Assembly: GCA_025594325.1 (NCBI GenBank) | Contig: JANHCV010000002.1 | Coordinates: 248,001-312,000, forward strand | Direction: 5' to 3' | Origin: Blastocladiella emersonii ATCC 22665 | Taxonomy: Eukaryota; Fungi; Blastocladiomycota | DNA: 64,000 bases | Notes under the pieces: model-generated | Seen by the model: the letters and a program-made list of their open reading frames with translations, nothing else | Database searches by the model: none | Told to the model about the DNA's origin: nothing | Program-made: the position numbers and the translations under genes | Part shown: one piece after another, positions 1-60,656 of the stretch | How positions within the stretch are numbered: position 1 is the stretch's first letter | How the letters are laid out: the number at the start of each line of letters is the position of its first letter

Positions 1-1460
1 TGCGCCATCGCACGCCGTGCTTGAGTCTCAACTCCCAGGGCTCGCTTCGCATCGAGGTTCAGCCCAAGTCGACCCCGCTTGATCTTGCGGCCTTTGCGTC
101 GTGGCTTCGTGAGCAACTCGGCGAGTTTGGCGAGCTGCGCTCGTTTACACAGGTCGAGGAAGCGTCGCGCCAGTACGCGATTTGTACTCGTACTGCCACC
201 GCACGCTGGGCTAACGATCACTCTCCCGGATCGTGTAGTGGGTTGCTGGTCGCCTTCGTCGAGTTCTTTGACGGCCGCGATCGGATCAAAGCGTGCACGG
301 AACTGAGCGAGGCGCGGTTCGACGGATTCACCATCGATGTCCAGTTTGCGTGGGATCAGTCGAGCGTGCACGTGTCTCCCTTCCTTACCTTCGTGTGACG
401 CGGCAACCTACACTGATCCGCATCTCATCTTAGTGATATCACGGAGAACATCTTTAACCATTGTGTCGAGCTCCCGATACGACTTCTTCCGAAATGGGCC
501 AGATCACTTCTCAATCCCACCGACGACGAGGAATACCAACACGAGTTGGAGTTTGCTTCGCGTCGCGCCAGCGCCATCACTCTCGAGGAGCTGAGGGGCG
601 GGTCCGACCCGCTTCGTTCTCGCCCGCAATCCCGCTCTCGCTCACGTTCTCAGTCTTGTTTGGAGTCCCGCTCTCGCTCTCACACTCGCTCTCCCTCGAA
701 CGATGCGGGTGCTTGCATCAACCAGCCTGTACCGGCGCGAGGCCACGATCCAGCACAGTATGGGTACTCGACGCCCCGCGACCATTCGCGCGGGCGGTCG
801 CGCCGCCGTAGCCGCTCACCGCGCGATTCGCGCGGCCGTAACAGTTCCGACGACCGGGATCGGCGCGCCCATCGCGACCGCGACTACGGATACGAGAGCC
901 GCGGCCGGTCTCGGTCGCCCTCGCGGCATCGTAACGATTCGTTGTCTAGCTTACCTTCCTTCTCGCCGTCATTCTCGAATTTACACCGCTCCGACTCGCA
1001 CGTTCGCGGGCCGACGAACGAGGTCCATCCTTCGCAGAACTTTTACTCCCCGCCGACGAGCGGATTCGTGCCGCCCTTCAATCCATTTCCTGCGGTCGCA
1101 CCTTATCCCGGAACGCCACCGTTTCCCTTGCTCGCTCAACAGCAGCAGCAGTATCATTTCGCCCACGCGCTTGCGCTGCAGGCATCGTTCGCGGCGGCCG
1201 TCGCGTCCGACCCGCCGCTCTACTCTTCCTTGATGGCCTTTGGTTTCGGCGGTATCGCTTCGGTGCCGGCCGAGTTCACAGCGAATAGCCCAATGTTTGC
1301 AGCTGCTTCCGCTCCACAGCCTGTGGGTGAGCCGGCGCACAAGCCCGTTGGGGAGTCCACACCGCCTTCGATTCCGAGTGGTGGTGGCGGCGAGGAATCA
1401 AGTTCGACGGCGGTCCCGCACCCGAATGAGCGGGATCAGGCCGAAGAGGCGGGTAACTAG
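1..1460 (+). CDS. SR1: Mei2-like tandem-RRM + RS + Pro/Gln protein, 5' partial
   Basis: Spliced model: ..172 / 239-367 / 434-1460. Reads GSLRIEVQP..FGELRSF, then LVAFVEFFDGRDR..FAWDQSSV, then DITENIFNHCVELPIRLLPKWAR, RS repeats and a Q/A tail. Intron 3 has a GC donor. Confidence 0.85.
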
Positions 1461-1986
1461 GTGCGTTGTTGGTTTGATGGTGAGAAAATGGTGATGGAGA
1501 TACGCGAGAGCAGTTTGATGGAGCGGGGAGGCATGGCGAGCTCCTCGCCGCCATCGAGGTCGAGTGCGTAATAAACTTGTAACTGTCGAGCTCGCTAGGC
1601 TCTTTGGAGAGATAGAGCTCCGCTGAGGCGTCTCTGGTTTCATCGCACTCTCGTTCTCGAAGCCGTATCGTTCAGCGACACAGACAACACTGGTCGACTC
1701 AAGCACACGACCTCGGTGCGAAGAGAGCTTGGGGATGCGGCGATGAGTGATTGTTAGGCTGATGGGTTCGCGGGACGCGTGTTGTTGACGCAGGGCAAGG
1801 TCGCGAGAAGTAGAGGGACGGGCTCGGTAAAAATCCCGGTAGCCAGCGGCGGGCGGGAGACGCTACGCGACGCGTTCGAGCAACGCGAGAGACACGTGTG
1901 GATGATACAGCGACGTTGCAAGTTGGGCGACCGGTCAAGTGGCGCCACTCCCTGACTCCGCTTCCGCTCTCCACCCGCAACTCTCC

Positions 1987-2030
1987 ATGGAACTGATGAA
2001 CAGCGGCCGCAACGTGTAACTTGCTGCAAT
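1987..2030 (+). promoter_or_regulatory. SR-family leader: uORF MELMNSGRNV* + TAACTTGCTGCAAT box
   Basis: ATG 1987, TAA 2017-2019, 11 nt before main ATG 2031. Confidence 0.7.
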
Positions 2031-4162
2031 ATGAGTGATTCTCGGGCGAAACCGCCGAGCAAGGTCTCGCTTCTCCCAAACGCGGAAATGGCCCGAGGTG
2101 ACGCCACGACTTCAGCCGCCGAGGGCCTGTTCCCGCCGAGCCGGTCGATTCGCTTGTGGTGGACGACTGACACGGAAGACAAGGCCGTCGACTACCGCCG
2201 GGAGCTTCTGAGGCAGTCCCCCGGCTCGTACGAAGCGCGTGTCTCGAGGACCCGGATTGTCCTCGACGGGCACTCGTCGGAGTGCCAGCTCGCCATTATC
2301 AGCTTTGTATGCGCAGTTTCGATTGTTCACCGCTCAGCAGTTCCGCTCACCGGCGATCGGCATCTGTAGCACGACATCCGCGACGCCCAGGCGGCCATGA
2401 AGTACTGGAACGGGCGCAAACAGTGGGGCGTCAAAATCGAGGCCCACTTCCTGATTCCGAAGACGCCCGCGCACGAGCGCACGCCGTGTTCTTCTCCAAA
2501 CAACGAGGGCTCGCTTCGCATCGACCTGCGCCCACAGGCAGCCATGCCCGCGGACTCGAGCCGAACTTGGTTGCGCGAGTTTTTAAGCAAGTTTGGCGGA
2601 ATTCGCTCGTTTGACGTGACCCAAGAGTCTCGCGAGTTCGTATCTCCCGTATCACTTCTGATCCAGACTTCCGCGGCTGACCGTTGCTCGCTTGTCCTGT
2701 AGCGGCTCCCTGGTCGCGTTTGTGGAATTTTACGACAACCGCGCCCGCCTCGAAGCTTGCGAAAAGCTGAACAATATGCTTTTCAGGGACTATACGATCC
2801 GCGCCGAGCTCGCGTGGGATGCGGCTTCAGTGTACGTCACTAATCCTTTTGATGCCCGGGCTTTGTACTGACGTCCATCTATCTTGATGTAGCGACATTG
2901 TGAAACGGATCATGAGCCGGTCCGTCGCCGTGGCACAGGGTCTTGTTCCGAAATGGGCCAGGTCGTTTGTCGTCTCAAGCCCGAGCGCGGGCGAGCAACC
3001 CGCGGGCAACGCTTCTCATGACCTGCATCAACCGGAAGGTCGCGGCTCCTTGAGCAGTCGCAGCGACGTGCGGCGTCCTAGCTCGCCTTCGCACTCCAGT
3101 CGTCGGTCGCGGTCCCGCTCTCGCTCTCATTCTCGCAGCTCTCAATCCCGCAGCTCTCATTCTCGTAGCCGTGATTTGCAGCGCCGCAGCCGCGATTCCG
3201 ACCGTACGATGAAATCATCGCGCGGTTCCCGCAGCCGCTCGCCGCGCAGTTCGCGCAGTTCGCGCATCTCGCGCGATCAGGCCAAGTCTTCCGACCAAAC
3301 CCGGCGTCGCAGCCGCTCGCGCGACACCCGCAGCAGCGAGCACGAGCCTCGCCGTCGATCGCAATCGCGAAGCAAACGCTTTTCGCGTTCTTCGCGGTCG
3401 GACGCTCGTTCTCGTTCCAGCTCCGGTTCTCGTTCTCGCCGCCGCGAATCCCCGCGTTCCCGTGCTAGCGAATCTACTGCCGAGGCCAATTCTGCTTCGT
3501 CCTCGATCGCTGTAAGCGACTCTATCCCGGCTCTCAACGCGCTTGCTGGTGCGCCCGCGCCCGCGGGTCCATCGTTCATTGTGCTGCCCGCGTCGGCTCT
3601 GGCGTCGCTCATCCAGTATCAACAACAGCCGCAGCAGCTCCAATATCCTCAGCTACAGCTCGAGCAGCTTCACCAACCGCAGCAGCTTTACCAGCCGCAC
3701 CTCCAGCTCCAGCAGCCGTTCCACCACCCCCAATTACAGCTTCAGCAGCAGCAGTCGAACGTCGCTCAGCCGCTCCAGCTGCAGTTTCACCAACCTCAAC
3801 CGCAGTTGCAGCTCCAGCAACAGCTTCTTCATCCGCAGCTACATCTTCAACAGCAGCAGCCGAACGTCGCCCAGGCGCTGCAGCTGCATGCGTCGCTCGC
3901 GGGCGCCAACAACTCGATGCTCCTCTCGTCCATGATAGCACAGGGCCTCGCTGGCGGCGGCGGCACTGGCGCGTATCTCGCGGGCAACCCGCTGCCCATG
4001 GTTCCCGCGGCCCCGCAGATGCAGTTGCAGATCCAGCCGCTCCAAGGGATGGGCATGGCGTCGCACCAGCTCCTGCCCTTGGTTCACGGCGGCAGCGCCA
4101 ACGGTGCAGGTGTTAGCGTTTCGGCGGCGAAACGTCTGAGCAAGTCGGCTTCGCGAAAGTAG
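2031..4162 (+). CDS. SR2: Mei2-like RRM1-RRM2 + RS + poly-Q protein (4 exons)
   Basis: FPPSRSIRLWW..LAIISF | HDIRDAQAAMKYWNG..HFLIPK..NNEGSLRIDLRP..FGGIRSF | GSLVAFVEFYD..ELAWD | DIVKRIMSRS..VPKWAR, then RS and Q-rich regions. The pattern PSR..DIRxA..HFxIP..N[EQ]G[ST]L..F[VI]EFYD matches the Mei2-like RRM pair as I recall it. Confidence 0.85.
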
Positions 4163-5159: not shown

Positions 5160-5203
5160 ATGAAGCCAATGAACGACTGCCCTCGGGCTTAACTTGCTGC
5201 AAC
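5160..5203 (+). promoter_or_regulatory. SR-family leader: uORF MKPMNDCPRA* + box
   Basis: ATG 5160, TAA 5190-5192, main ATG 5204. Confidence 0.7.
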
Positions 5204-6916
5204 ATGGACCCGAACGAGGAACAGTCCCCGGAGCGGGCGCCGCTTCCCTCAAACTCGTCGCAGGCCGAAGCCGAACCCGAGATGCCGCCGAGCCGCTCGA
5301 TCCGCCTGTACTGGCCGGGCGACGCGCGAAGCCCCGTCAACTACCGCCGTGAGTTGGAGGATCAGTGCCCCAACGCGTACCAGGTCCACGTCTCGAGCGC
5401 ACTGATTCGGACTGGCCAAGACTCAGACGTCTACGAACGTCAGCTCGCGATCCTCGACTTTGTGCGGACTTTCTTGCTTGCATCCGACCGAGTGCGTACT
5501 CGAGCTTACCACTTACGGCGCGACTAGTATGACATCCGCGATGCCCAGGCGGCGCTCAAGCGCTGGAACGGGCGGACGGAATGGGGCGTGCGCGTTGAGG
5601 GCCACTACATGCTTCCTGACATGCCCGCGAAGGAGCGCACGCCATGCAAGAAGCCAGGCAACCAGGGCTCGCTCCGCATCGATGTGCGGCCGCGAGGACC
5701 CACCGCCGCGTGCCCTTGCCCCAATCTAATTCGTGACCACTTGAAAACGTTTGGCGAGCTGCGGTCGTTTGACGTGGTCCAGGAGCAGGGAAAGTACGTT
5801 GTTCTCGCACTCCACTCACTTCTCCCACTACTCGCGCTCGAGCTGACGATACTTTCGTGTTTTACCGCGCAGCGGGTCCCTGGTCGTGTTCGCCGAGTAC
5901 TTCAGCAAGCGCGAACGGCTGATTGCGCTCAAGGCGCTGGAGCGCGAACGGTCAGGGGACTATACGATCCACGTTCAACTTGCGTGGGATCAGTCCAGCG
6001 TGTACGCCACCTGCGTTTGCGACGCGCAAACACGCTGACTCCCGACGCTCGCCATTGTAGGGACATTGTGAGGCGGATTTTGGACCGTTCGGTCACCTTC
6101 TCGACCCCGGGACTGCTTCCTAAATGGGCCAGGGGACCGCCGTCGCACAGCGGCTCTACCGCGAGCGCCATGTCGCGCGGGAATACCGATCCGCAGCACC
6201 CTCGCACGCGTCTCCGCTCTCGTTCTCGCTCTCCTAGCCGTAGCCGTAGCCGGCACGGCTCGGCCCACGGCCACAACCGAGGGCGGGACGAGCGTAACCG
6301 CTCGCCACCTGGGCGATCCCGCCGCAACACCCCTTCGCCACGCCGTCCGCGCGACTCGCATGATCCTGTTCGGCACCGTCACAGCGCTCGCGATGACCGT
6401 GGCTCTAGCCGCGAACGCCATGAGCGCGTTTTGCCGCCGCGGACCCGCTCTCGCTCTCCTCGTCGCGACCCGCGCAGCGCTCGTACTCGCAACCCGACCC
6501 GCAAGGCCAAACCGGTTTCCGCGGTCGGAACTACCGAGGAAATAACGCTGCCGCCGAATCCTTTCCTTGCGCCGCCGCCAGCCACGCTGCTGGACATGCC
6601 CGTGTTTCCGTTTCCGCCGCAACAGCAGCAGCAGCAGCCCGATTTTGCGCAAGCGCTTCAGCTAGTCTCTCTCGCGGCCATCAACCCGTACTTCTTCTCG
6701 CTCGCGCAGGCGCAGGGTCTCGGCGCGCTCTTCCCTGCTCCCATGCCCACGCCTACCGCGGGTCAGCCGCTCCAGTTTCCGGGGATGCCGCTCATGCCGC
6801 CGCCGCCGATTTCGCTCCCGCCGGTCGTCACCGGCGGTGAACGCAACGTTGGGTCGACTGCGGCGGCGAGCGAGCACGGTGGCGCGCAGGTGATTCCGAA
6901 CTCCAGACGCGGGTGA
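5204..6916 (+). CDS. SR3: Mei2-like RRM-RRM-RS protein
   Basis: MDPNEEQSP..PPSRSIRLYW..LAILDF | YDIRDAQAA..NQGSLRIDVRP | GSLVVFAEYF..LAWDQSSV | DIVRRILDRS..LPKWAR; same three intron positions and phases as the other copies. Confidence 0.85.
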
Positions 6917-7728: not shown

Positions 7729-7781
7729 ATGAAGTCGATGAAGCGAATGAACGCGAACCGCGATACATAACTTGCTGCAAC
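7729..7781 (+). promoter_or_regulatory. SR-family leader: uORF MKSMKRMNANRDT* + box
   Basis: In-frame ATGs at 7729, 7738 and 7747; TAA 7768-7770; main ATG 7782. Confidence 0.7.
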
Positions 7782-9619
7782 ATGGATAAATCCGAGTCGC
7801 AGCCTTCTCCTGCCTCGCTCCGCCCGAATGCTGAGCCAAAGCGAGGGTCGGGTTTGGGGGTGGCGACTGCCGCAACAGCTGACCCGCGGACTGCATTTCC
7901 TGCGAGCCGTGGGATCCGCTTGCGTTGGATGCCCAAATCAGACGATATATCCGATATCAGCCGCGAGCTTTGGAAGCTGTATCCTCGAGCTTACGCGATT
8001 TCCATGAAGAGCGCCACGGTCACCCGGGATGGGCGCTCTGATCAGCGGTGCCAGTTTGCAATCCTCAACTTTGTATGTTTCTGGGGCATCTACCTTTAAA
8101 CTTCATGTCCTTGTCCGGCTCAACGTGCTTATTTGTAACTCCGTGGGACACACTGTAGCATGATCTGCGCCACGCTCAGGCGGCCCTGGAGCAATGGCAC
8201 GGGCGCGAGCTGTACGGGAATCGCATCGAGGGCCATTACATGATTCCATGCGAGCCCGTGCAGCAACGCACGCCGTATAACTTCAAGAAGGGCCAGGGCT
8301 CGCTTCGCATCGAGCTGCGGCCGCGGAAAGCTGCGCCCGAGTACCCGAGCCATGGTCGGCTTCATCAACGCTTGTGCAGCTTTGGCGATTTGCGCTCGCT
8401 CGACGTGACCCAGGAGCGTGACGGGTATGTGGTTTTGAGCCCAAAGGCTCACACTGGAACGCGAGCTTACAACCACTCGTCACTTAGCGGCCCTCTTGTT
8501 GCCTTCGCCGAGTATTTCGATTCACGTTCTTGTCTTCGTGCCCGTGACGACTTGAACAAATCCAGGTTCGAGGGCTACACGCTCTACACTGAGCTCGCGT
8601 GGGACCAATCCTCGATGTCCGCCTCCGCCATTGCAACGGACATTTCTCTTGCTGACGCGCCGTCCACGTCTAGTGATATCGTGAAGCAGGTGCTGGACCG
8701 GTCGATTACTGTCGCCTCACACTTTCTACCTCCGTGGGCTAAGCTGGCCGACCCGACGCAACCTGCCGCCCGTGTACAGCGCCAGTCTCGCGGATCAGCA
8801 GGTCGCGCGAAGGACCAGCGCCGACTGCCTGCTTTGGGCGACCACAATCATTCACGGATTCCCCATCGCACTCGTTCACGCTCTCGCGCACGCTCCCGTT
8901 CTCATTCGCGAATCCGTCGTGCTGAACCTCGAGATCGCTCGCTCAGCTGTTCCCGCCGTCGGAGCAAATCGCCGCGACCCAGTCCTCGCAGTCAAACCAA
9001 CGATATTGATCAGGGTCGGCGTCGCGACCGTACGCGTGCCACCCGGCGGAGCTCGAGTCCGCCATCACGGCGCGCCTCTCGCTCGCCTCCGCCCTCTAGC
9101 TCTCGTTCTCGCCGCCGCACTCGAACTCTTTCGGGATCCTGGTCTCGTTCCCGCGCTCCTGAACTTGTTTCGCGGAGTTCGCGTGACGCCAAGCCAGACA
9201 GCGGTCCCCTTGTGCCTTCGATTCCGACAGCCAGCTTCATCCCAACGCTTGACATGCTCGCTTCCGCAGCACCGTCGGCCATGGAATCATCCTACATCGT
9301 TGTGCCCGCGGCTGCGCTGCCCTCTCTCATCCAGCAGTACAACCTCGCCCAGACCCTCCAGTTCCAGCAGGCCTCACTCGCGGCGGCGACCGCGAGTCCG
9401 ATGCTGCTCACGAATAACCTTGGCCTCGGTGGCGGCGGCAGTCTCGCACAGCTCAACCCCATGTACTCGATGGCTGCGGTCCCCGGTGCACCGTTGCAGC
9501 AGTTCCAGGGCACGATGCCGCTCCCCGTAATGCCAGCGCCGCCTCAGAGAGGGTTTGACCCAATTGCGATGCAGCAGCTTCGGTACATCTTTGGCAGTGC
9601 GGGAATGCCAGGGAAGTAG
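7782..9619 (+). CDS. SR4: Mei2-like RRM-RRM-RS protein
   Basis: FPASRGIRLRW..FAILNF | HDLRHAQAA..GQGSLRIELRP | GPLVAFAEYFD..LAWDQSS | DIVKQVLDRS..LPPWAK; introns 8425-8487 and 8617-8673. Confidence 0.85.
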
Positions 9620-9968: not shown

Positions 9969-10109
9969 CGGCCGGGGTGGCTGTTGAGGGCTTGCGGAGA
10001 AGGCTTCTGGATTCTGTCAGCGAGGAATCGGGCGTCGCGATGCGCCACCACGAATCCTCCCCTATCTCTCCCTTCGTCATCAGAAAAGCAACGTCAGTAC
10101 TAGAAACCC

Positions 10110-11516
10110 ATGCATCACACTTGCTGCAGTGCGCAGCTGGCGCGCTCCCTGACCCTCGTGCTGGTCGTTGCCGCCGCCGCCGCGCTGGTCGCGACGGCAG
10201 CCCCCCTCGAGAAGCGGCAGACCGCCTCGGCTGCGCCGGCCGCCTTCCAGCTGTCCTTTACCTGCGACGCCACCGCGCCCGTCTTCTGCGCGAAAGCCGA
10301 GCGCGCCCTGCAGCGAGCCGCGCGGCGCATCACGCAAGAGTTCCGGTTCCGCCGCACCGTGACGTGCGCCGTCACCTTCTTCCTGCCGTGCGGGTCCGCG
10401 TCGCCGCCCGCGAGCTGCTCCGAGACGCGCCTGCTCGGGTCCGCCACGCCGACCGCCTTCTACCCGGTCCGCCTCAAGGACGACGGCCAGCTCTACACGG
10501 TGCCGTCGGCGCTGCTCAAGCAGTTTGACCATCCCGAGCTCGACGACGCCAGCCGCGTCGCGTACCCGGCGTTCGACCTGCGCGCGCGGTTCAACGCGGC
10601 GCGCACGTGGTGGTTTGCCGAGGACGGCGACCCGCCCGGCGGGAACGGGACGCTCGCGCAGAACACGTTCGACCTCGAGCGCGTCGCCACGCACGAGCTG
10701 CTGCACGGCCTCGGGTTCGGGAGCAACGTGCTGCTGGGCTTGCCGATTGCGAGCGATACGAAGCCGGCGTTCATCTTGCCGCAGTACGAGTCGAGCCCGC
10801 CGTCGACGCCGCCCTCCCTCGGCGTCGTCATGAGCGCCGACCCGTTCTACCGCTTCGCGCACCCGGGCTTGTGGGACCGCTTCACCGTCTTCTCCAACGG
10901 CGTTCCCGCGACCGCGTACGGCGCCAACATCACGCGCGCGTTCGACCGGCTCGTCGCTGCGGGCACCATCAAGCCCGCCGGTTCTTCGGGCGGCGCGAGC
11001 TACTACAACCCGCAGGCCGTGGTCGATGCGCTGGCCGCCGACCCCGACGCGTCGTCGGCGATGCAGGCGCTGGCCCGGTTCGGCACCACGCGCGAGTCGC
11101 TGGTCTTTGACACGGACGCGTGGCCGCCCAGCTCGGCGGCGTCGCCGAACTCTGCCGTCAAGTACCCGCTCGAGACGGGGCTCGCGCCGTTCACGCCCGG
11201 CAGATCGGCCGTGCACCTCGCCGACACGGTGGCGCGGAACGCCGACTTTCTCATGGTGTGGGCGTCGAACCGGCAGACGTACGGCTCCATGATCGCCGCG
11301 ACGCAGGCGCCCGAGTCGGGGCTGGGACCCGCCACGGTCGCCATTCTCACGGCGCTCGGGTACGCGCGGAGCAGCGCGACTGGGTTCACGAGCCGCGCCA
11401 ACTTGATCGAGCTGGTCCCTGAGACGTTCGGGACCGTCTCTCACGCGGCTGCGTTCGCGGCGCCCAGCGTGTGGACCTGCACTGCCGTTGTGATGGCACT
11501 CGCTCTCTCACTGTGA
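10110..11516 (+). CDS. Secreted, probably GPI-anchored zinc metalloprotease-like protein, copy 1
   Basis: Intronless 468 aa ORF; N-terminal hydrophobic signal; ATHELLHGLGFG (HExxHxxG); downstream SAVHL candidate third ligand; hydrophobic C-terminal tail. Confidence 0.75.
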   Translation: MHHTCCSAQLARSLTLVLVVAAAAALVATAAPLEKRQTASAAPAAFQLSFTCDATAPVFCAKAERALQRAARRITQEFRFRRTVTCAVTFFLPCGSASPPASCSETRLLGSATPTAFYPVRLKDDGQLYTVPSALLKQFDHPELDDASRVAYPAFDLRARFNAARTWWFAEDGDPPGGNGTLAQNTFDLERVATHELLHGLGFGSNVLLGLPIASDTKPAFILPQYESSPPSTPPSLGVVMSADPFYRFAHPGLWDRFTVFSNGVPATAYGANITRAFDRLVAAGTIKPAGSSGGASYYNPQAVVDALAADPDASSAMQALARFGTTRESLVFDTDAWPPSSAASPNSAVKYPLETGLAPFTPGRSAVHLADTVARNADFLMVWASNRQTYGSMIAATQAPESGLGPATVAILTALGYARSSATGFTSRANLIELVPETFGTVSHAAAFAAPSVWTCTAVVMALALSL

Positions 11517-11916
11517 ACCCATGCCTAGTTTCTAGTTTCGGGCACGAATAGAACCATTTTTGTACAATCAAAGCTGTTGATCTCTCACCGTTGTCACTCT
11601 TGCTTGCTCAGACATGCTTCTTTGGTCGCGGATCGGTACGACGCGCGTGATGGCTCGCGCGATCCCGTCGTTGTATGGCGGTAGCTAGGGCGCACGCCAA
11701 ACTTCCTCGATATCCAGCTGCCCGGATAGGGATCCGGTCAAGCCGGGTCTTGTGGGAGATGTTTGCGGCAGTCACTGAGGGTCGGGCGAGGGAGATGCAG
11801 GTCAGGAGGCAGAGCTGGGCGACGCGCTTGAGGACGCGACGCGACGCGGTTGGCGCGATGAGTCAGACATATCGCGGACGCTGCCTGTTGGCCGTTCGCT
11901 CCCGGCGCACCACCCC

Positions 11917-11960
11917 ATGAATCCAATGAACACTTACCCTCGAGCTTAACTTGCTGCAAC
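11917..11960 (+). promoter_or_regulatory. SR-family leader: uORF MNPMNTYPRA* + box
   Basis: ATG 11917, TAA 11947-11949, main ATG 11961. Confidence 0.7.
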
Positions 11961-13701
11961 ATGGACCCGAACGAGGAGCAATCGCCGGCAGAGGCCCCGC
12001 TTCCCTCGAACTCGTCGCAGGCCAACGTCGATGTACCCCCGAGCCGCTCGATCCGCCTGTATTGGCCGATGGATGCGCGCAGCACCGGCGACTACCAACG
12101 AGAGTTGGGGGATCTGAACCCCAAAGCGTACCAGGTGCATGTCTCGAGCGCGTTACTTTGCGTGAGTCCGGACACGCCCGCCCGCGATTTGTACCTCGCG
12201 ATTCTCGACTTTGTACGGACTGCCTTGCCTGCATTTGGATCGTCCGGCAGCTTATCACATACGGCGCGAGTAGTGCGATATCCGTGATGCCCAAGCGGCC
12301 TTCGAGCGCTGGAACGGGCGGGTGCAGTGGGGTGTGCTTGTCCAGGCCCACTACATGCTTCCACGCACGCCTGCGCAGGAGCGCACGCCCTGCATGCATC
12401 AAGGCAATCAGGCCTCACTCCGCATCGAGGTGCGCCCGCGGGCGGCCGCGTCCGCGTGCCCCGGCCGCGACTTGCTTCGCGGCCACCTGGAAACGTTTGG
12501 CGAGCTGTATTCGTTTGACGTGGTCCATGAATCGCAGGAGTAAGTCGCTTTCGCTCCTTCTCGACTCGGTTCCGCCCGGACTGACGAGCGTTTCGCGATC
12601 CACCGTGTAGCGGGTCCCTGATCGTGTTTGTCGAGTACTTCAAGAAGGGCCGCGCACAGATCGCACTCAATGCGCTGGAGCGCGAACGGTCGGAGGACTA
12701 TACACTCGACGTTGAGCTCGCATGGGATCAATCGAGCGTGTACGTAATCGCGCGGCTCTTGCACTACCGACGCGCGACGACGCTGACCCCTCGATTCTCC
12801 TCCCCGTAGGGACATCGCGAAGCGGATTTTGACCAACTCAGTCGATCTTGTGACCCCGGGGCTGTTCCTGAAATGGGCCAGGTCACCACAGTCGCGTCAC
12901 GGCGACGGTTTCGCAGACGTTGCTCCTAGCAGGAAGGCTGATTCGTGGCGCCCTCCCACGCAGACCCGTTCTTCTTCTCGCACACGGGTCCGCTCTCCTC
13001 CTCGCACGCAGGCTCGCTCTCCTTCTCGCACGCAGGCTCGCTCTCCTCCTCGCCATCGCAGCCAGAGCCAGAACGGCTCGGCGCACGGCCGCAACCGAGG
13101 ACGAGACGAGCGGGACCCACCGCGCGACCGCACGACCGAGCGATCTCGTCGGCGCGCAGATTCGCCACGCCGGTCGCGCACTTCGGATGACCAAGGTCGG
13201 CACCGCGACCGCGCTCGTGACAAGCGGAGCCGCAGCCGTGGTCGCGAGCGCCGTGACCAGCACCGATCGCGGTCCCGCTCACGCTCGCGCTCGCGTCGTC
13301 GCGAGCCGCGCAAGTCTCGTACCCGCGGCTCGGCCCCGGCCCGCGAGACCAAACCGGTTTCCGCTGCGGCACCTGCGGATGAGCCCGCGCCACCGCTCGC
13401 GCTGCCGCCGCCGATGCCTCCGTTCCCGCAGCAGCTCCCGCAGCCCGAATTTCTTCAAGCGTTCCAGCTGGCCTCGCTCGCGGTCGCCGCCCCGCTCCTC
13501 CTCTCGTTCATGCAGCAGGCCCAGACTCTCGCTTCGCTTCCGCCGCAGCTCTTCCCCAACCCTGTGCCGATCATGCCGCCGCCGCCGCCCAGTTTGCTCC
13601 CGCCGGCCGTCATCGGCGGTGCACGCAGCAACGCTGGGCCGAGTGCCACTGTCAACGAGCACAACGGTGCGCAGGAGGTGCCCAAGTTCGAGGAATTGTG
13701 A
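11961..13701 (+). CDS. SR5: Mei2-like RRM-RRM-RS protein (closest paralog of SR3)
   Basis: MDPNEEQSP start shared with SR3; same exon structure; NQASLRIEVRP, LIVFVEYF, LAWDQSS, DIAKRILTNS..LKWAR. Confidence 0.85.
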
Positions 13702-13942: not shown

Positions 13943-13987
13943 ATGAAGCTGATGAACGCTGATTGCGACGGTTTACTTGCTGCAAAT
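13943..13987 (+). promoter_or_regulatory. SR-family leader with stop lost (TAA to TTA), fused in frame to SR6
   Basis: ATG AAG CTG ATG AAC .. GGT TTA CTT GCT GCA AAT ATG; 12-nt gap makes MKLMNADCDGLLAAN an N-terminal extension. Confidence 0.65.
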
Positions 13988-15886
13988 ATGGACCGATTCG
14001 AGGATAACTTGCTGGCCGAGTCCAACGACACGGTCCCGATGCCTTTGGACGCGAAGCAGGCGCTGGGAGTCAGCCCCCCGCCTCACCCAACCTCGGTGTT
14101 CCCGCCGAGCCGCTCAGTCCGCTTCCACTGGGTGCCCAAGGTCGGGGATACTTGCGATCATCGGGATGAGCTAGTCGAGCTGTACCCTAAAGCTTTCAGC
14201 GTGATGGCAAAGAGCGCCTTCATCCACACGGACGGACGCGACACACTGTGCCGCTATCTCATCCTCGACTTTGTACGACTCAGAGATAACTCATCTGGGC
14301 GAGAAGCAACTTACTCACCAGCACCCGTGTAGTACGATATTCGCGATGCTCAAGCGGCAATCGAGCTGCTGCACGGGCACGAGCGGTGGGCCACTCGCAT
14401 CATGGGTCACTTTATGATTCCTCGCGAGCCAGTGCGAGAGCGTGTCCCACATCACTTCCCGACGGGCGAGGGCTCGATTCGGCTTGTTCTTCAGCCGCGA
14501 ACGGCGTCGCCCGGTTCGCCGGGCCACGATCAGCTCCACGCACTTGTGAGCAAGTTTGGCGAGCTGCGCTCGTTCCACCTGAACAAGGACTCGAAAGGGC
14601 ACGTTTGTTGAAACAGTTTGCTGTCGTCGATGCAGCTGACCTTTCCTCTTTTTCTTTTAGAGACTTTTTGCATGTGTTCGCCGAGTTTTATGATTCTCGC
14701 TCGAGGGTTCGTGCGTGCAGTGCGTTGGATGGAACTCGATTCGAGGGCTACATGCTTCGGGCCGCGCTAGCATGGGATCAGGCTTCGATGTACGTCGCCC
14801 GCAAGCGACAGAGCGGTGAGCAACTTCTGACACTTTTCTTGCTGTAGCGACATTGTCAAACGGCTGCTCGACCGGTCCATCAAAGTCCCGCACGGCTTCC
14901 TTCCGCGATGGGCTCATCCGGTAGACAAGCCTGCTTCTTGGTCTTCAAACCGCAGCCAGCGGCGCTCGCTTGAAGCGGGGAACCGGGTCGATGCCCGGCA
15001 GCTCTTCTTGGTCTCGGACCTGCGAACGCGATCGTGGTCGCGCTCCCCTTCGCCTAGTATGGGCACTCAAAATGGCAAGCATCGTGGCTCGGGCCGCTCG
15101 CGCAACCGTTCTCCACCCCGGCGTGCTGCGAAGGAGGCCGATTCATCCGAAAGGTCATGGGATCGGGATCGCGATCGCGACCATGGCAGCCGTCGGAGCC
15201 CAAGTCGTGATCGCGACCGTGGCCGTGACCGTGACCGCAGTCGGCAGCACTTTCACTCGCGGGAAAGCTCTTGGGCGCGGACCGCGTCTCGCTCACGCGC
15301 GTATTCACGCTCGCGTCGTGACTCTCATTCGCGCACCAAGACTCGATCGCGCTCTGACGCTGCTTCTCGGACTGGCTCTCGTTCGTCTACTTCTTCTCGC
15401 AAGCGCGGATCCCGTCGCTCAAGCAACAAAGAAGCTAACACCAACTCTCAATCGACCGGCTTCGCCGCTCCTCCCGCAAGCGGGCTCCTGCCGACGCTGA
15501 GCGCGCTCGTTACGGCGCCTGTTGCCGCGAGCCAGTCGTACGTTGTGGTGCCTGCAGCGATGCTCTCCGCTGTAGTCAATCAACAGCAGCAGCAACAACA
15601 GCAACAGCAAGCCCTCGCCAATCTGCTCTCAATGCAGCAGATGCCGCTCGTAACCAATGCTAACACGAGGTTTCTCCCGTCAACGCATGGAATCGGCAGT
15701 GGTATTGCTTTCCTGAATCCCGTTTACATGGCGGGCGGAGCCAACCCGGTGCCGCTTCTGGTGCAGCAGCCGCGCGCCCACACCATGCCGCTATCGATCT
15801 CAGGCGTCAACTTCGGGCAAGCAGCGTTGCAACAGCAACAACAGTGGTTTGGCGATGCTCTCAGCAACTCTGAGCAGCCACGGTGA
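13988..15886 (+). CDS. SR6: Mei2-like RRM-RRM-RS protein
   Basis: FPPSRSVRFHW..LILDF | YDIRDAQAA..GEGSIRLVLQP | (GC donor, intron 14599-14660) DFLHVFAEFYD..LAWDQAS | DIVKRLLDRS..LPRWAH, RS, poly-Q. Confidence 0.8.
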
Positions 15887-16275
15887 TCGCATCTCGTTGT
15901 GGTGCATATCCTTGCCCGAGAGTGTTGTCCTCGTTGAGGATGTAGTCAATAAGAGATCAGTTCCTGCCTGCTCTAATTCTTGCGCATCAGCGCAAACTGG
16001 TTGAATCTCACCGTTACGATGGCTGTCGTGGTTTGAGCTGAGCGAGTGGTCCAGCTCTCGCGACCTGGATTGAGGTCCTTGGCGCACGATTGTCTTAAAA
16101 TTTTTGCAAACCTTCTTGAGCAAGGGGCGCGGCGGGGGCAACGACGCGATGACGCGGACAAGGTCGCGTTGGTCACATCACGCCACCTCGTCCGCCGCGG
16201 CTTCCCACCGCTCCCTCCCCGGCGGAACACAACGAAGCGAAGGAAGATTGAACACACTCTCTAACTCGATGCAAC

Positions 16276-18145
16276 ATGGATGAAATGCAGCCCGTATCGT
16301 CTCCCGGGGATCACCTCGAGGCCCCGCTTCCTTCGCCCTCGGCTCCCGCGCCAGGGCCGACGCAGACGGCCACTGATCTTTTCCCTCCGAGCCGTTCGAT
16401 TCGATTGCACTGGATGGTGGAGCCGGGAGACACCGCCAATCGCCAGGCCGTCGTGCAGACTTTGACTCCAAGCGCTTACTTGGTCAGGGTCAAGACGTCC
16501 AGTGCCAAACTGGACGGCCGGAGGCACCTTCTCCGCTCTGCTCTGCTTGATTTTGTGCGCATAAACCATGCCGGTCGTGGCGGCGGCGCACAATGTCCTC
16601 ACTCATCCGGTTGTATGTAGGCCGATCTCCGCGATGCCCAGGCCGCGCTTGTGTACTGGCAGGGCCGGGAGCTCTGGGGTACGCGCGTCGAGGCCCATTT
16701 CATGATCCCGAGCGAGCCCGTGCAGTCTCGGACGCCGTACAGGAATGCGCGGGGCGACGCGTCGCTGCGCATCGAGCTGCATCGGCGAAACGGTCCGCCC
16801 GTGGAGAACCCGCAGGAGCTTGACGAGCTGTGGACTCTGTTGGCCCGCTTTGGCGATCTACGCTCGTTGGACCCGTTTCAAGAGCTACCGGGGTGCGTCG
16901 TTTCGTGCCGCCTTCAGCAGCGAGCTCCACAATGACTGAAAAACAACGTATTTGAATCTGAAGCGGTGCTTTGCTTACATACGCCGAGTACTTCAGCAAT
17001 GCCAATCGCTTCACCGCGTCGCAGGCGCTGCACCTCTCGCAGTTCAAGGACTACGAGGTCTACGCCGAGCCCGCGTGGGATCAGTCGTCGCTGTGCGTTT
17101 GTCTCGCCCGCCCTGGTAATGATTTCCGACTGACGTACACATCCCACTGCATAGTGACATTGTGAAGCAGGTGCTCGACCGATCCATCACCATTCCGCGC
17201 CACCTTCTTCCGGTCTGGGCGAGATCGCTGGACAACGCTTATGGTCCGCCCACGCCATCATTGAAACCCGCTCACAAGGCTCCCGCGCGCCGAAGCGACT
17301 TGCCGAAACCGATAGCGCGCGCTCGCTCCCGCAGCCGCGACGCGACGCGCCGTCGCCAGCGCGAGTCCCCATCTCGCGGACGCGATTTGCGTCGGGATGT
17401 GAGCTCGCGCCGCAGGCCTTCGCGCAGCCGCTCTCGTTCCCGCGCTCGCCATTGGAGTCGTTCGCCGCGCCGTTCCCGGCACCAGAGCAAATCGCGCGAC
17501 CGCAGCGGACGCCGTGAGCGAAACGTCAAGGATCGCTCCACTTTGCGCTCGCCTTCACGCTCGCGATCCCGTTCGCGGTCTCGTTCGCGGCGCCATCGCG
17601 ACCGACGCCGTTCCGCATCATCTTCGTCGCGCTCTAGTTCTATCTTGCGGTCCCGCTCGCCGTCGCGCTCAACCCGCCGCAGCCGCGAAAATGACGGCGA
17701 CCGTGACCCGATCCTTCCCGAAGCGCCGTCGGCGAGTAACGTCGCGCCGCTGACGCCCGCGGTCGGTCCGGGATACGTCGTCGTGCCCATGGCGGCGCTC
17801 TTCCAGCCCCAGTTCGCGGCCCTTGCGTCGCCGCAGCCCACCGTCGCGTCGCTCGCCGACAATCCGATGCTGCTGCTGTCGTCGATGTTGGGCCAGGGCC
17901 AGGGTCTCGGGACGATGCTACCGAGCCCTGCGTATACGCCGACTGCAACGGGAGCCGCAGCTGCGCCGTTCCCGATGTCGCTGCCGTTCGCACTCTCGCT
18001 CGGTCTTCCTCCGCTCCAGTCGCCGATCCCGAGTGGCGCGGCTCGTCCGAGCGAGACTCCTCCAGTCACGCCAGCGCCAACCAAGAAGCCATGGACCCGC
18101 ACCAAGGCCTCGGCCAAGAAGACGTCGGCCAAGTCGTCCGAGTGA
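16276..18145 (+). CDS. SR7: Mei2-like RRM-RRM-RS protein
   Basis: FPPSRSIRLHW..ALLDF | ADLRDAQAA..GDASLRIELH | ALLTYAEYF..PAWDQSS | DIVKQVLDRS..LPVWAR. The leader keeps the TAACTCGATGCAAC box but has lost the uATG. Confidence 0.85.
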
Positions 18146-18826
18146 GTTTGCCGATTGGTTCAATACAGAGTATGGGCCAAGACCAGCTATCGTCGCCGTC
18201 GCCACGCGCGAACGAGCCAGGGTCTGGCAAACCCGTGGAAGACGTAAACCCTTTTCGAATTTGTTGTTTGTCGCCTAATTTTGTGGATCGAAATGATAGA
18301 ATATAATTCTAACTAGGATTTTACTGTGATGAATCCCGCGAGGGAGTGGCGGTGATGAACAATGTCTCGCGACGCGTCTCGCATCTCCCACGTGCCTGGT
18401 CACGCCATTTCGCGACGCGTCTTTCCTCTGCTCCTATCTGTCTCCCGTGGTCGTTTAAAAAGCGCGATTTCGCGAAATCTGTAAGAAAAGGACAAAAGAA
18501 TGAAGAAACAAATCCCAAAAGAATAAGTGAGCGATCAATGCGTCAAGGCGGAAGGAGGGTTCGCGAGGGCAGAGGAGTACCAGCCAGAGCTCGGAGATAA
18601 TGACAAGATTTGAATTGGACCGATTGTAGTCGATCTGTCCCCAGGAATATCCCCAGACGTGTCGCGTTTGATCACCCGTCCTTGCCGCTCCGCTCGCGCT
18701 CACGCGAGGGTTAGTAACAAACTCAGGCAAAGAGCACCTGGCCCGCTGTCATGAGATCCTTATTCTATGCTAATATAAAGAATTGGCGACCGGTAGCGTT
18801 AGGAACTGCTCCCCTCCGTGCTGGGA

Positions 18827-18900
18827 CCCCCACCCACCCCCCACCCACCCCTCACCCTCCCCCACCCTCCCCCGCCCAACTCAACCTCAACTCAACTCAG
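18827..18900. repeat. C-rich low-complexity tract (G-quadruplex-type on minus strand) followed by CTCAA repeats
   Basis: CCCCCACCCACCCCCCACCCACCCCTCACCCTCCCCCACCCTCCCCCGCCC, then AACTCAACCTCAACTCAACTC. Confidence 0.7.
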
Positions 18901-20209: not shown

Positions 20210-20694
20210 GAGCTTCAGTTCATGACTGTCGCCCATTCTCGGCAGCGGCGGATCACGGTCCTGCCCCAACGCCCAACCCGTCCGCGGCCATAGGTGCCTC
20301 GTTTGTGACTGTGCCTGTGTCCTCCCTGCCCGCGATCGCCCACGCGGTCCAAATGCAGCAGCAGGCGTCGCTCACAGCTATGGCCGCACCGAACCCAATG
20401 CTTCCCGCGTTCCACTATGGCGGCGGCGGCGCGTATGCGAACCACATGCACGCGATGGCTGCGCCCGCGAGCATCAACGCGCAGTTCCACAGCATGTCGC
20501 CGCACGTACCGGTTCCTTACGTTGCGGGCGGCGGCTACAACTTGTTCGGGGTGGATCAGTATCAGCATCAGCCCGCCGCTGGGTATGGAGGCCTGCCACC
20601 GTCGCTGCCGAAGTGGACGGAAATGGAGAGAGCAAGCATGCTACACCCAATGTATCGATTATTCATCTGTTTCGCCTCGCGAACCGGAGAGTGA
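20210..20694 (+). pseudogene. Orphan 3' tail of an SR10-like gene
   Basis: GPAPTPNPSAAIGASFVTVPVSSLPAIAHAVQMQQ..NPML is nearly identical to the SR10 tail (56687-57070, minus strand); no RRM exons upstream. Confidence 0.65.
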
Positions 20695-51673: not shown

Positions 51674-51703
51674 TTGGTATACATGTATTGCTCCTCTTCC
51701 CGC

Positions 51704-56686: not shown

Positions 56687-58499
56687 TCATGTCTGTTTAG
56701 GAGGCGATGGGCACCCGGAACCAGCAGCAGGCTGATGCTGCATCATCTGATACATCTCGTGCGAGTTACGGCCGCCGCCAGCGTGCGGCGTCAAGTTCTG
56801 GAACTGCGGGTTCATGCCCGCGGCCGCGGCCGCGGCCATCGCGTGCATATGGCTCGCGTACGCGGCGCCGCCGCCACCGGATTTGAGCGCGAAGAGCATC
56901 GGGTTTGCAGCTGCTGCGGCTGCGAAAGACGACGCCTGTTGCATATGGAACGCGTGGGCGATCGCGGGCAGGGAGGACACGGGCACAGTCACGAACGAGG
57001 CACCCACACCCATGGCCGCGGACGGGTTGGGCGTTGGGGCTGGACAAATGTCCGCCGCCGTCGAAAATGAACGACGGTCGCGACTCGAGTAAGCGTCGCG
57101 AGAGTAACGGGAGCCACGGCTATGAGAGCGCGAACGGGAAAGTGACCGCGAACGAGGGCGTGAGCGAGAGCGATAAGTGCGCCGTGTCCGCCGCCTGGCT
57201 TCGCGTGCGCGGCTCACGCTTCGCCGCCCACGGCGACTACGATCGCGACTATGACCACGAGAGTCGAGTCGAGCGGGCGAACGCCTGCGTCGGCGAGAAC
57301 GCCTGCGCGAGCGTCGTGAATCGTTGCGCTGATGGCGCGGGACAGTGCGGTTGCGTGAACGTGAACGAGAACGAGAGCGCGACCGTCGATTTGAGCGAGA
57401 AGCGGTCGACTCGAACGGGGACCTCGAATGGCGACCACGGTTCGCGGGCTTTCGCGTCGCCGGCTTCGAAGTCGGCATGGTGGCAATCGTCCGACCCCAC
57501 TTGGGAAGAAAGCGCGGGCTGACCGTGACAGATCGGTTCAAAATCTGCCTCACAATCTCACTACACAAGAGTCGATGCGTCAACGAAAGCCCATCACTGG
57601 GGCAGGCGGAACGTACATTGACAATTTGTCCCACGCAAGCTCAACGTGAAGCGCGTAGTCTTCAAACCGAGTCCCGTACAAACCACGGAGCGCAAGGAGT
57701 CGACATTGGGTGTCAAAGTACTGGAAAAACACGACCAGCGGGTCGCTGGAAGTAACCGAGGGTCAGTTAACCTGAGTCTCCGCCGTTCGTCCAGTGGCAT
57801 TGAGAAACGTACCTACTCGACTCTCGAATGAGCTCAAACGAGCGCACCTCGCCAAACTCGGTCAGGAGATCGCGAGGCAGATCGCGGCTCGGGTCCGCGG
57901 GCTCGGCCGTTCGCGGGCGCAGCTCGATGCGCAGCGAGCCTTCGCACTCTTGGTGTGCTGGTACGGGGTGCGATGCTCAACGGGGATCCCGGGAATCATG
58001 AAGTGCGCGTAGACGCGAACCGCCAACGCTCACGCCCGCTCCACTGCGCAAGTGCTGCAATAGAGTCGCGGATGTCGTGCTACGAGAGTAATCGGGTCGA
58101 TGAGGGAAGGGCGGGGCCGGGAACAACACGAGAACGTACAAAGTCAAGTAGTGCGACATGACGTTGCATGCGACGCCCGCTGTAAATGACATAATCTGAG
58201 CTCCGTGTGGTGACGCTGAAGGCGAGAGGATGCAGCTCAGCCAGCTCCTTGCGGCGGTCCGGCATCCTTCCAGGCTCGGTGACCCACATCAGTCGAATCG
58301 TGCGGCTTGGAGGAAAAATGGCCGTGTTCTCCGCGTCTGCGTCTGATGCCGAGGTTACAGCTGATATGCACGTCTCCGGCGCTGCTGGTACAGCCGTCAT
58401 TGCCGCAAGTTCGGGCACGTTCGCCCGCTCCGAGTTTGGAAGAAGCGGAGTCGTGCGGCGCGCATCGTCGGCTGGCATTGATGTGTTCGGATGGTCCAT
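56687..58499 (-). pseudogene. SR10: SR-family gene with two frameshifts in exon 2
   Basis: Exon 2 HDIRDSIAALAQWSGRERW slips by 1 nt at ~58021 (TGA follows) and again at ~57944 before EGSLRIELRP; other exons intact. Confidence 0.7.
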
Positions 58500-58543
58500 G
58501 TTGCAGCAAGTCAAACCTTGCCGCAAGTGTTCATTGGCTTCAT
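58500..58543 (-). promoter_or_regulatory. SR-family leader: uORF MKPMNTCGKV* (TGA stop) + box
   Basis: ATG 58543, TGA 58513-58511, main ATG 58499. Confidence 0.7.
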
Positions 58544-58901
58544 CGACGGGGTGCAGAGAGAGAGGGCGGCGAGGCCCGACTCGTCACGCCCAACGCGTCG
58601 CTCACGAGTGGCGTGGCTCACGTGACTAACGCCACACAAAAACCCTGCAAGAAACGCAAGGGCCGCTTCCTGATAGTTTTGGCTATGACCGTGGTCCAAA
58701 ATAGGTTGAATGACGCGTCATTCGATTCTCGAACGTGCCAAACACACTGCGCGTCGGTTGATGGCCATCGTGATGGTCGCAGCTGTACGTGGGCCATGTC
58801 CGAGCTTACCTCGTTAGTTCGGTCGTGGTTTCGCTTTGTTCGTGCGTCATAGACATAAACTCATACGCTGTATATTCATACATCTTTCTCCGCGCTCCCT
58901 C

Positions 58902-60656
58902 TTAGTTGGGTGGGGCTGGAAAGGTCGGGTGCTGCATCAACATCACGCCGCCAAGGCCGCTGAACCCGCCCCGACTCGTGTACTGGAACAGCTGTGGTGT
59001 CGTGTTCACTCCCTGAAGCTGAATTGGTGGAGCTGCAGCGGCCGTGTAAAAGGGATTCGTCGCGACAAACTGAGGAACAAGCGGACCCAGGCCGCCACCG
59101 AAGCCCTGAGCCACCGCGGGCGCGTGAAGAATGGGGTTATTCGTAGCCGCGAGCGATGACTGCGGTTGAAGCATTTGGGCAAGATTTTGCTGCTGGGTAA
59201 ACGAAGAAAGCGCTGTCGCAGGAAGGATCATAAACGAAGGAGCAGCTGTCGTTGCTAGCACGCTTGGAGGAACCAAGGGTGCTGAAGCAGCATTCATGTC
59301 GCGAGCTGGTTCATGTCCGCGAGTGCGCCGAGAATCGCGACGACGAGAGCGCGAGCGTGGCTGAGGGCTTCGATGAGAGCGCGAGCGGGACCGCGGGCGC
59401 GAAGTGCGCGAACGACGAGTGTTTGATCGCGAGCGCGAGCGGCGGCGTTCGCGGGTGCCCCCATGTGGATGTGGTTGAGTACGATCGCGAGGACGGCTGC
59501 GGCTCCGCGCCGCTCGCGACGTATGGTTGCGATGGCGATCACGCGAGCGGCTGCGCGAGGGGTCGCGAGATGCGCTCTCTCGGCCCGCGTCACGGCCTCG
59601 GATCGAAGCATCCTGGTCGCGATCCCGAGCGTCAAGGCCCTTCGAATTGGAGCGAGTGCGCGGAGTTATGCTGGCCGGGCGCGCTGCAGCGGACCGGACA
59701 AGCGAGCTGGCCCATTTCGGCAACACGCCTGAAGGCAAGTTGATCGGCCTGTTTAACAGCTTCTTGACAATGTCGCTACACCGAGTCCGTGGTTAAGTGC
59801 AGGCACATGGCGAGCTCATGGGCGGGAAAAACGTGCATTGATGTCTGATCCCACGCAAACTCGACGTGGAGCCTGAAATCTCCAAGCTCGCTCAAGTTCA
59901 GAGCCCTGCATGCCCTGAGTCGATCCCGGTCGTCAAAGAATTCAACAAAAATGGCCAAGTATCCGCTACACGGCCAGAATTCAGACGAGTGTTAGCTAAG
60001 TTTTGGGTTGTAGGGCTGAGAGTGTGACGGAAACGGACCTGCTCGACGTTTGAAAGCGGCCGAGCGAGCGTAACGGGCCAAACTCCAAGAGCCGCTCGCG
60101 CAGCCGATCGTAACCGAGCGGCGTTGGCAATCTTTTCCACGGGCGTAACTCGATCAGTAGCGAGCCCTCGCCCGTGTGGTGGTAGTGCGGCGTGCGGTGT
60201 TGCACAGGCTCTCCAGGGATCATGTAGTATCCTTGGATACGACTGCCCCACTGCTCCCGCCCGTGCCAATGTTCCAGCGCCGCTTGCGCGTCGCGTATGT
60301 CGTTCTACAGGGATCCATATTCGGATGAGACAAAACATCGCCTGGTTTGCGGCGGAAGAGCATGGACGCACAAATTCAAGGATTGCGAGCTGGTACAGTT
60401 GCGACCGGCCGTCAAGTCGGAGAAGCGCACTGTTGACTTTGACTGAGTACGCCTCGCGACACTGTTGCTGCAGCTCAAGCCGGTAATCGGTGACATCCTC
60501 CGAGCGTTGCTTCCAGTACAAGCGAATCCTCCGCATCGGAGGGAAGCCAAATGGCGATAGGGGCGCGTCGCCGCCCCCGCTCGCTGACGATGGAGTCGGA
60601 TCGAGCGGGGCCTGTCGCTCAGTCGCTGACGATGATTTCGGCCTCGGTCCGTCCAT
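58902..60656 (-). CDS. SR11: Mei2-like RRM-RRM-RS protein
   Basis: FPPMRRIRLYW..LAILEF | NDIRDAQAA..GEGSLLIELRP | YLAIFVEFFD..FAWDQTS | (GC donor) DIVKKLLNR..LPKWAS. Confidence 0.85.

Follow-up and report, generated by a model that had tools for sequence, protein, structure and literature searches.

A window of 64,000 nucleotides (nt) from Blastocladiella emersonii ATCC 22665 (contig JANHCV010000002.1, positions 248,001 to 312,000; "the window" below means this whole stretch, whose GC content is 59-72%) carries an array of related genes whose predicted proteins join a pair of RNA recognition motifs (RRMs) to an arginine/serine (RS) dipeptide domain. An earlier note, made from the DNA letters alone, had counted at least 11 copies and read them as a radiation of serine/arginine-rich (SR)-like proteins built on RRMs of the Mei2 type. 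Searching the window by tblastn with one copy as query returned 12 related places (E = 1e-7 to 1e-25). To model splice junctions, every GT/GC...AG pair was scored against a reference copy. This splice-aware modelling bore out the earlier count and yielded nine plus-strand copies (c1-c7, c9 and c10, within 3-24741), two minus-strand copies (c11 and c12) and one 3' relic (c8), as listed in the table below. Reading frames are intact in ten copies and span 502-646 codons.

Three intron positions are common to all copies, in phases 0, 2 and 2, as the earlier note had stated. Intron 1 lies before (H/Y)D(I/L)RDAQ, intron 2 before strand beta3 of the second domain and intron 3 after AWDQSS. The introns are 56-86 nt long, with donors of the GT(A/G)CG type and acceptors that are mostly (C/T)GTAG, and all are GT-AG except for two GC-AG introns. 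In eight copies exon 2 has 266 nt, against 272 nt in c7 and c10 and 267 nt in c11. Exon 3 measures 129 nt in every copy but c1 (135 nt). The modelled introns match the published profile of B. emersonii introns, which are mostly 60-79 nt, GT-AG and provided with a CTAAC-like branch site (PMC2773782). Additionally, the junctions agree with the usable public models at all three sites. Introns 2 (8425-8487) and 3 (8617-8673) of c4, and likewise intron 2 of c1, are multiples of three and contain no stop codons; retention of the two c4 introns would thus preserve the reading frame.

The copies are 30-57% identical to one another in amino acid (aa) sequence, and concerted evolution was ruled out on this ground. 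The two frameshifts in exon 2 of c11 recur with zero differences in Logan contigs of three DNA runs; runs and assembly derive from one sample, however, which means that this support is not independent.

Table 1. Positions of the family copies and leader boxes in the window (exons are given in order of translation; aa, amino acids)
Feature	Position	Strand	Exons	Remarks
c1	3-1460	+	exon 2 part 3-172, exon 3 239-373, exon 4 434-1460	5' end cut by window edge; public partial model P0001
c2 (H9P43_002026)	2031-4162	+	2031-2306, 2370-2635, 2703-2831, 2893-4162	646 aa
c3 (H9P43_002027)	5204-6916	+	5204-5461, 5528-5793, 5873-6001, 6061-6916	502 aa; youngest pair with c5
c4	7782-9619	+	7782-8072, 8159-8424, 8488-8616, 8674-9619	543 aa
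c5	11961-13701	+	11961-12212, 12274-12539, 12611-12739, 12810-13701	512 aa
c6	13988-15886	+	13988-14272, 14333-14598, 14661-14789, 14848-15886	572 aa; intron 2 GC-AG
c7 (H9P43_002029)	16276-18145	+	16276-16554, 16621-16892, 16964-17092, 17155-18145	556 aa
c8	20215-20619	+		relic, C-terminal tail only; 62% aa and 77% nt identity to c11 tail
c9 (H9P43_002030)	20852-22572	+	20852-21127, 21204-21469, 21527-21655, 21720-22572	507 aa
c10 (H9P43_002031)	22790-24741	+	22790-23059, 23134-23405, 23473-23601, 23658-24741	584 aa
c11	56687-58499	-	exon 1 58140-58499, exon 2 57813-58079, exon 3 57617-57745, exon 4 56687-57560	probable pseudogene; two frameshifts in exon 2, exon 4 still open
c12	58902-60656	-	60372-60656, 60039-60304, 59837-59965, 58902-59775	517 aa; intron 3 GC-AG
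Leader boxes	2017-2033, 5190-5206, 7768-7784, 11947-11963, 13973-13990, 16262-16278, 20838-20854, 22776-22792	+
Leader boxes	60670-60654, 58513-58497	-

Layout and predicted fold of the proteins

An alignment of the proteins contains the layout that had been read from the DNA, namely a degenerate RRM1, an RRM2 ending in AWD, a DIV...LPxWAR element, an RS domain and a Pro/Gln/Ala tail. A variable N-terminus of ∼40 aa is followed by domain 1, which begins FPPSRSIRLxW..., and by the linker H(F/Y)M(I/L)PxEPVxxRTPC. Domain 2 carries the motifs QGSLRIEL...FGELRSF...LVAFVEYFD...LAWDQSS and leads into (V/I)DIVKxxLxRS...LPxWAR, the RS domain and the Q/P/A tail, in which SY(I/V)VVPAAAL, LAQALQ and NPMLL are kept across copies. 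N-termini, RS lengths and introns are indeed highly diverged, and c3/c5 is the sole pair that still aligns as DNA (75%).

Every window copy has an RS domain, with 116-205 aa in which R+S make up at least 40%. Within the best 50-aa windows, 38-62% of residues belong to RS/SR dipeptides, and (RS)n runs extend up to 12 aa. Manley and Krainer reportedly defined SR proteins in 2010 by one or two N-terminal RRMs followed by an RS domain that spans at least 50 aa, exceeds 40% in RS content and has consecutive RS/SR dipeptides. The window copies have such a downstream domain and, as judged from the AlphaFold2 folds described below, from profile matches in the Protein Data Bank (PDB) that are all RRMs and from a Pfam RRM_1 match in family member P0005, two N-terminal RRMs. 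The RS domain that the earlier note had claimed is therefore one by the usual definition, the general form of which is quoted in PMC3173450. We conclude that the RS region is coding, because a single open frame in every copy joins the conserved LPxWAR to the conserved tail and because its 400-700 nt are far above the intron length of B. emersonii.

The public models, which for the window are H9P43_002026 to 002031, err systematically. In P0002, P0003 and P0007 the RS domain has been spliced out as a false 'intron'. Public models also fuse c10 to the next gene (P0004), the c8 relic to c9 (P0003, H9P43_002030) and a LIM/RapGAP gene to a member of the family (P0009; L003 4001-11156). Because RS domains are mis-modelled and neighbours fused, the family is invisible in protein databases and needs re-annotation.

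The queries for structure and profile comparisons were single exons, read-through frames or partial models from the public annotation. Pfam found no significant match in single exons of c4. A profile search of PDB sequences returned RRM proteins only, as weak generic matches (best E = 0.005), with the RRMs of SR proteins at E = 0.07-0.9. AlphaFold2 predicted two complete RRM folds followed by the helix of the DIV element for residues 1-250 of family member P0008 (pLDDT 85, pTM 0.73). For c2, it predicted two RRM folds (beta-alpha-beta-beta-alpha-beta) followed by a helix (pLDDT 82.6), with a long beta2-beta3 hairpin in RRM1. Comparison with Swiss-Prot models matched tandem-RRM proteins throughout, and only MEI2-like proteins (AML1/3/4/5, OML2/5) superposed on both domains together, with template modelling (TM) scores of 0.49-0.52 and a root mean square deviation (rmsd) of 4.8-8.4 Å over 180-206 residues. 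The other tandem-RRM models in Swiss-Prot reached TM 0.26-0.43 at an rmsd of 13-25 Å. A fold search of the PDB gave generic tandem-RRM proteins at TM ≤0.34, with no solved structure fitting the domain pair, and the ESM Atlas gave generic RRM clusters only, below trust level.

Several residue changes set the family consensus apart: TLFVRN has become SIRLxW, the RNP1 Phe of RRM1 has become Ile or Leu, and GTLF has become GSLR. In both RRMs, Phe of strand beta1 is replaced by Arg. By Pfam, the third RRM of Mei2 (RRM3, PF04059) was found in none of c4, P0005 and P0008, and in the protein alignment only the RS domain and the low-complexity tail lie past RRM2.

Relationship to a pan-fungal two-RRM protein

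We searched a family profile, built from the alignment of exons 2 and 3, against 1.84 billion representative proteins. The top nine matches (2.6e-54 to 2.5e-14) are all hypothetical proteins of B. emersonii ATCC 22665, and the family was found only in this organism among the proteins searched, which agrees with the lineage specificity proposed earlier. The next matches, from Catenaria (8.3e-13) and Sorochytrium (1.3e-12), belong to a family of two-RRM proteins that we call FAWD. Past B. emersonii there are 98 matches (8.3e-13 to 9e-4), mostly fungal where the source was looked up, and most have a pair of RRMs that ends in (F/L)AWD. Catenaria, Sorochytrium and Paraphysoderma, all blastoclads, are each represented by a single protein. 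A Pfam scan of 97 of the 98 matches detected RRM_1 in 92 and PF04059 in none. When the Catenaria RRM pair served as query, it found orthologs in Basidiomycota, Mucoromycota, Glomeromycota, chytrids and an aphelid, and the same search reached MEI2-like proteins carrying PF04059 at ∼1e-25.

Profile-profile comparison with hhalign gave a probability of 99.6% (E = 7e-25) for the family against FAWD proteins, 98.3% (E = 1.3e-14, 118 columns) for the family against the MEI2-like pair and 100% (E = 1e-49) for FAWD proteins against the MEI2-like pair. Gene structure can be compared as well. The Catenaria and Sorochytrium genes both have introns where the family has intron 1 (phase 0, before YD(I/L)R) and intron 2 (phase 2, before QRF(V/I)E), with an exon 2 of 87-88 codons between them, and neither has one in the place of family intron 3. 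Both orthologs also have an R/S-rich stretch of 95-100 aa, weaker than that of the family, and basidiomycete orthologs have none. From this distribution we conclude that the RS domain had its beginnings before the radiation and was enlarged within it.

In a maximum-likelihood tree, the 13 B. emersonii sequences form a single clade (100/100), whose stem measures 1.56. The family and four canonical blastoclad proteins group at 89/79, most other fungal orthologs form one separate clade (98/93) and the MEI2-like outgroup stands apart (100/100). A quick tree of 98 rows agrees. Together, the profile searches, the profile-profile and fold comparisons and the two shared introns indicate that the family goes back to a two-RRM protein which is found across fungi as a single copy, by way of its blastoclad ortholog, and that the nearest relatives of this protein are the true MEI2-like proteins.

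The earlier assignment of the two domains to the RRM1-RRM2 type of Mei2 is thus upheld by the profile search, the hhalign score, a shared series of motifs and the superposition of both domains on MEI2-like models. What has to be amended is the origin, since the direct ancestor is not Mei2 itself but a FAWD protein that already had no RRM3. Outcomes that the earlier note had named as refuting its reading did not materialise: the RRMs do not group with those of classical SR proteins, relatives carry one canonical gene and no one-to-one orthologs of the copies, and dN/dS in the core is below 1.

Other searches were negative. A homologue search with the c4 open frame found no match, and one with the family alignment, swamped by low-complexity words, returned three proteins of the same genome only. 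A search for related loci in a contig collection came back empty, which carries no weight because that collection is confined to bacteria and archaea. Literature searches turned up no paper about either this family or the fungal FAWD proteins, and the B. emersonii genome paper makes no mention of RRM proteins.

Copy number, selection and upstream sequence

We verified at least 17 copies. In addition to the ten intact, one frameshifted and one relic copy in the window, four lie a short way upstream of it, and another contig carries at least three. The upstream sub-array consists of four full copies on the opposite strand, H9P43_002016 to 002019 (L002 1384-11929; JANHCV010000002.1, about 219.8-230.3 kb, minus), and is separated from the window start by three unrelated called genes. 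In the maximum-likelihood tree c1 is the sister of H9P43_002016, the end copy of this sub-array (100/95), which suggests an inverted duplication. One copy of the sub-array has a long acidic D/R/H-rich N-terminus. The copies on contig JANHCV010000003.1 (L003 9832-11646, 12160-13200 and about 14371) are of a basal subtype with a more canonical beta1 in RRM1 (PTRTLLFRV), which already has intron 3, LPPWV and an RS domain.

Synonymous divergence (dS) between cores ranges from 0.6 to more than 2 in pairwise comparison, indicating that the duplications are old; a recent burst was ruled out, as dS is too high. For c3 and c5, the ratio of nonsynonymous to synonymous divergence (dN/dS) is 0.16 in the C-terminal half of RRM1, 0.40 in RRM2, 0.48 in the DIV-WAR element, 0.53 in the RS region and 0.92 in the tail. 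The values of 0.16-0.53 in this youngest pair point to purifying selection on the folded core. The two dead copies, c8 and c11, are more closely related to each other than to any other copy. With a young pair, a frameshifted copy and a relic, the family has the marks of the birth-and-death evolution that the earlier note had envisaged.

The predicted start codons of ten copies coincide with a leader box, TAACTTGCTGCAA(C/T)ATG, which is absent elsewhere in the window and in the other loci we fetched; the copies of the upstream sub-array and those of contig 3 are without it. The TAA of the box is the stop codon of an upstream open reading frame (uORF), which has 10-13 codons in six copies and usually starts M(K/E)xMN. 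In c6, TTA replaces TAA, so that the uORF has lost its stop and is fused in frame to the coding sequence. The uORF start codons have been lost in c7, and the uORF of c12 has two codons. Because box and uORF are conserved in the DNA beside diverged coding N-termini, they argue for function and for common control. Additionally, most copies have runs of ACGCG/GACGCG (MCB-like) in their promoters, ∼150-250 nt 5' of the starts of c3, c5, c6, c2, c10, c11 and c12.

Two further observations concern the array itself. A 1.5 kb segment is present twice, at 10055-11563 and 28784-30290 (96.6% identity), with one copy inside the array between c4 and c5; it encodes a 468-aa protein with a signal-like N-terminus, an HExxH motif and a weak Matrixin match (E = 0.04). 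The region 18200-20100, where the 5' two-thirds of relic c8 would be expected, is lower in GC content (0.586), has a positive AT skew and does not resemble the family.

Proposed function, alternatives and known systems

These genes form a real and old tandem family that arose from the blastoclad FAWD ortholog, and we lean, with modest confidence, towards an explanation in which they encode SR-like adaptors in nuclear processing of pre-mRNA or of messenger ribonucleoprotein (mRNP). On the stem of the family the RRM core evolved very fast, exchanging the beta1 Phe for Arg in both RRMs, and RRM1 lost its RNP1 aromatic and gained the long beta2-beta3 hairpin. On the same stem a third intron was gained, a new helix and the LPxWAR element were added after RRM2, and the weak ancestral R/S stretch became a full RS domain. 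Later divergence of the copies followed the birth-and-death mode, with purifying selection acting on the folded core. Judging from the architecture, the RS domain may be phosphorylated and serve in nuclear or speckle targeting and in RS-RS contacts, the RRM pair could provide copy-specific recognition of RNA or protein, and the conserved motifs of the Q/P/A tail might make further contacts. The short uORF, 12 nt before the start codon, would place most copies under a common translational control.

Several points weigh against this explanation. It is the architecture of the proteins that suggests nuclear location, RS phosphorylation and a role in splicing, and loss of the beta1 aromatic from both RRMs makes RNA binding doubtful. 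Of the family members tested, P0005 is the only one to pass the Pfam RRM_1 threshold (31.9 bits; cut-off 20.7), and c4 and P0008 fall short of it. Classical SR proteins have a C-terminal RS domain, whereas that of the family is internal. No RNA run is listed for the locus, so the splice sites are predictions, and most dN/dS values are rough because dS is near saturation. Lastly, the grouping with blastoclad orthologs is moderately supported and the stem is long, so that the exact attachment of the family is not certain.

The adaptors could also be part of something larger, a second and convergent invention of an SR system, in which a large independent repertoire of RS regulators, probably of at least 30 genes, arose from a Mei2-type pair, with stage-specific copies (zoospore, germling, sporulation) that control splicing or the storage and release of mRNA; we consider this unlikely. 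Equally doubtful in our view is a cytoplasmic role as mRNP or granule regulators, in which the RRM pair would target granules or proteins and repress translation, and the RS and Q/P/A regions would drive condensation, keeping silent, for example, the stored mRNAs of zoospores. In fission yeast, RRM1 of Mei2 provides a precedent, as it acts in P-body recruitment and translational repression independently of RNA binding by RRM3 (PMC12951761). The absence of RRM3 from the family, its loss of canonical RNP aromatics and its long, low-complexity tails fit such a role, but the family has not kept the RRM1 aromatic on which Mei2 depends. Moreover, RS domains usually act in nuclear targeting and direct proteins to the nucleus. 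If, on the other hand, the array were a by-product of unequal crossing-over under little selection, most copies would be decaying or functionless. One frameshifted copy and one relic, a dN/dS of ∼0.9 in the c3/c5 tail, N-terminal and RS regions that evolve almost freely, and a genome of ∼63% GC, in which long chance open frames are likelier, would agree with this; even so, it is improbable, since 10 of 12 copies keep frames of 502-646 codons despite a dS of 0.6 to more than 2, none of the 33 splice junctions has been lost, exons 2 and 3 are of fixed length, core dN/dS is 0.16-0.53, and leader box and uORF are conserved as DNA where the adjoining coding sequence is not.

We give little credence to a selfish or conflict-driven expansion, in which the copies might, for instance, be racing against a virus or a meiotic driver. 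The size of the family, its clustering and its restriction to one lineage would suit such a conflict, as would the rapid evolution of the termini and the turnover of genes; however, there are no features of transposons or viruses, the duplications go back far and do not form a recent burst, and selection on the core is purifying, not diversifying. Hardly tenable, and already contradicted by the data, is the notion that these are ordinary splicing factors of the SRSF type which merely look odd. While N-terminal RRMs followed by an RS domain with 38-62% dipeptide residues in its best 50-aa window would suit it, the search of all proteins returned the Mei2-related FAWD family and no SR proteins, SR RRMs in the PDB scored no better than E = 0.07, the two-domain arrangement fits MEI2-like models, and introns are shared with FAWD orthologs.

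The family has a wider meaning, since RS-domain proteins are central to splicing control and at least 17 genes on a different RRM scaffold would represent an independent origin of the SR-like architecture. The family would offer a natural experiment on the growth of RS domains and the re-tooling of RRM surfaces, as well as a function-free handle on the little-understood RRM1-RRM2 module of Mei2 and on the conserved pan-fungal FAWD protein. Splicing in B. emersonii is sensitive to stress (PMC2773782), which makes a link between the family and splicing testable.

Among known systems, the closest are the FAWD proteins, for example those of Catenaria anguillulae (ORZ32542.1, P0010), Sorochytrium milnesiophthora (KAL7748110.1, P0011) and Paraphysoderma sedebokerense (KAI9143643/4, in the cluster of P0017), all uncharacterised, with others in Basidiomycota, Mucoromycota, Glomeromycota and chytrids. 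They share with the family the motifs PSR..., (F/Y)YD(I/L)R.A, (I/V)H(Y/F)S(I/L)P, QG(T/S)L preceded by a conserved Cys, F.E(F/Y).D.R and (F/L)AWD, the sites and phases of introns 1 and 2 and the absence of RRM3. The blastoclad members additionally have the R/S-rich stretch of 95-100 aa, a Q/P/A/M-rich tail and an AQ..Q..L motif. In contrast to the family with its at least 17 copies, each relative species has one canonical FAWD protein in the searches run here. FAWD proteins also keep the canonical RNP aromatics and have neither the third intron nor DIV...LPxWAR, those outside the blastoclads are without an RS domain, and the family sits on a stem of ∼1.6 substitutions per site.

The MEI2-like proteins (S. 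pombe Mei2, Arabidopsis AML1-5, rice OML, TEL) have a homologous RRM1-RRM2 pair (98.3% in hhalign), and among Swiss-Prot models theirs come closest to the family in the predicted placement of the two domains relative to each other. Unlike them, the family has an added RS domain, has lost the RNP aromatics and is without RRM3, the defining RNA-binding domain of Mei2; membership among Mei2 proteins was ruled out on this last ground. With SR proteins (SRSF, S. pombe Srp1/Srp2 and plant SR), the family shares RRMs followed by an RS domain of more than 50 aa with over 40% R+S and RS/SR runs, as well as the multi-copy state seen in plants. Its RRMs, however, are of no SRSF type and its RS domain is internal, followed by a tail of 130-180 aa; classical SR membership was ruled out because the nearest relatives are FAWD and MEI2-like proteins, with SR RRMs at E = 0.07-0.9. 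A published survey (PMC3173450) gives plants 18-25 classical SR genes and S. pombe, the only fungus counted there, 2; by this measure a family of at least 17 genes in a fungus is unusual.

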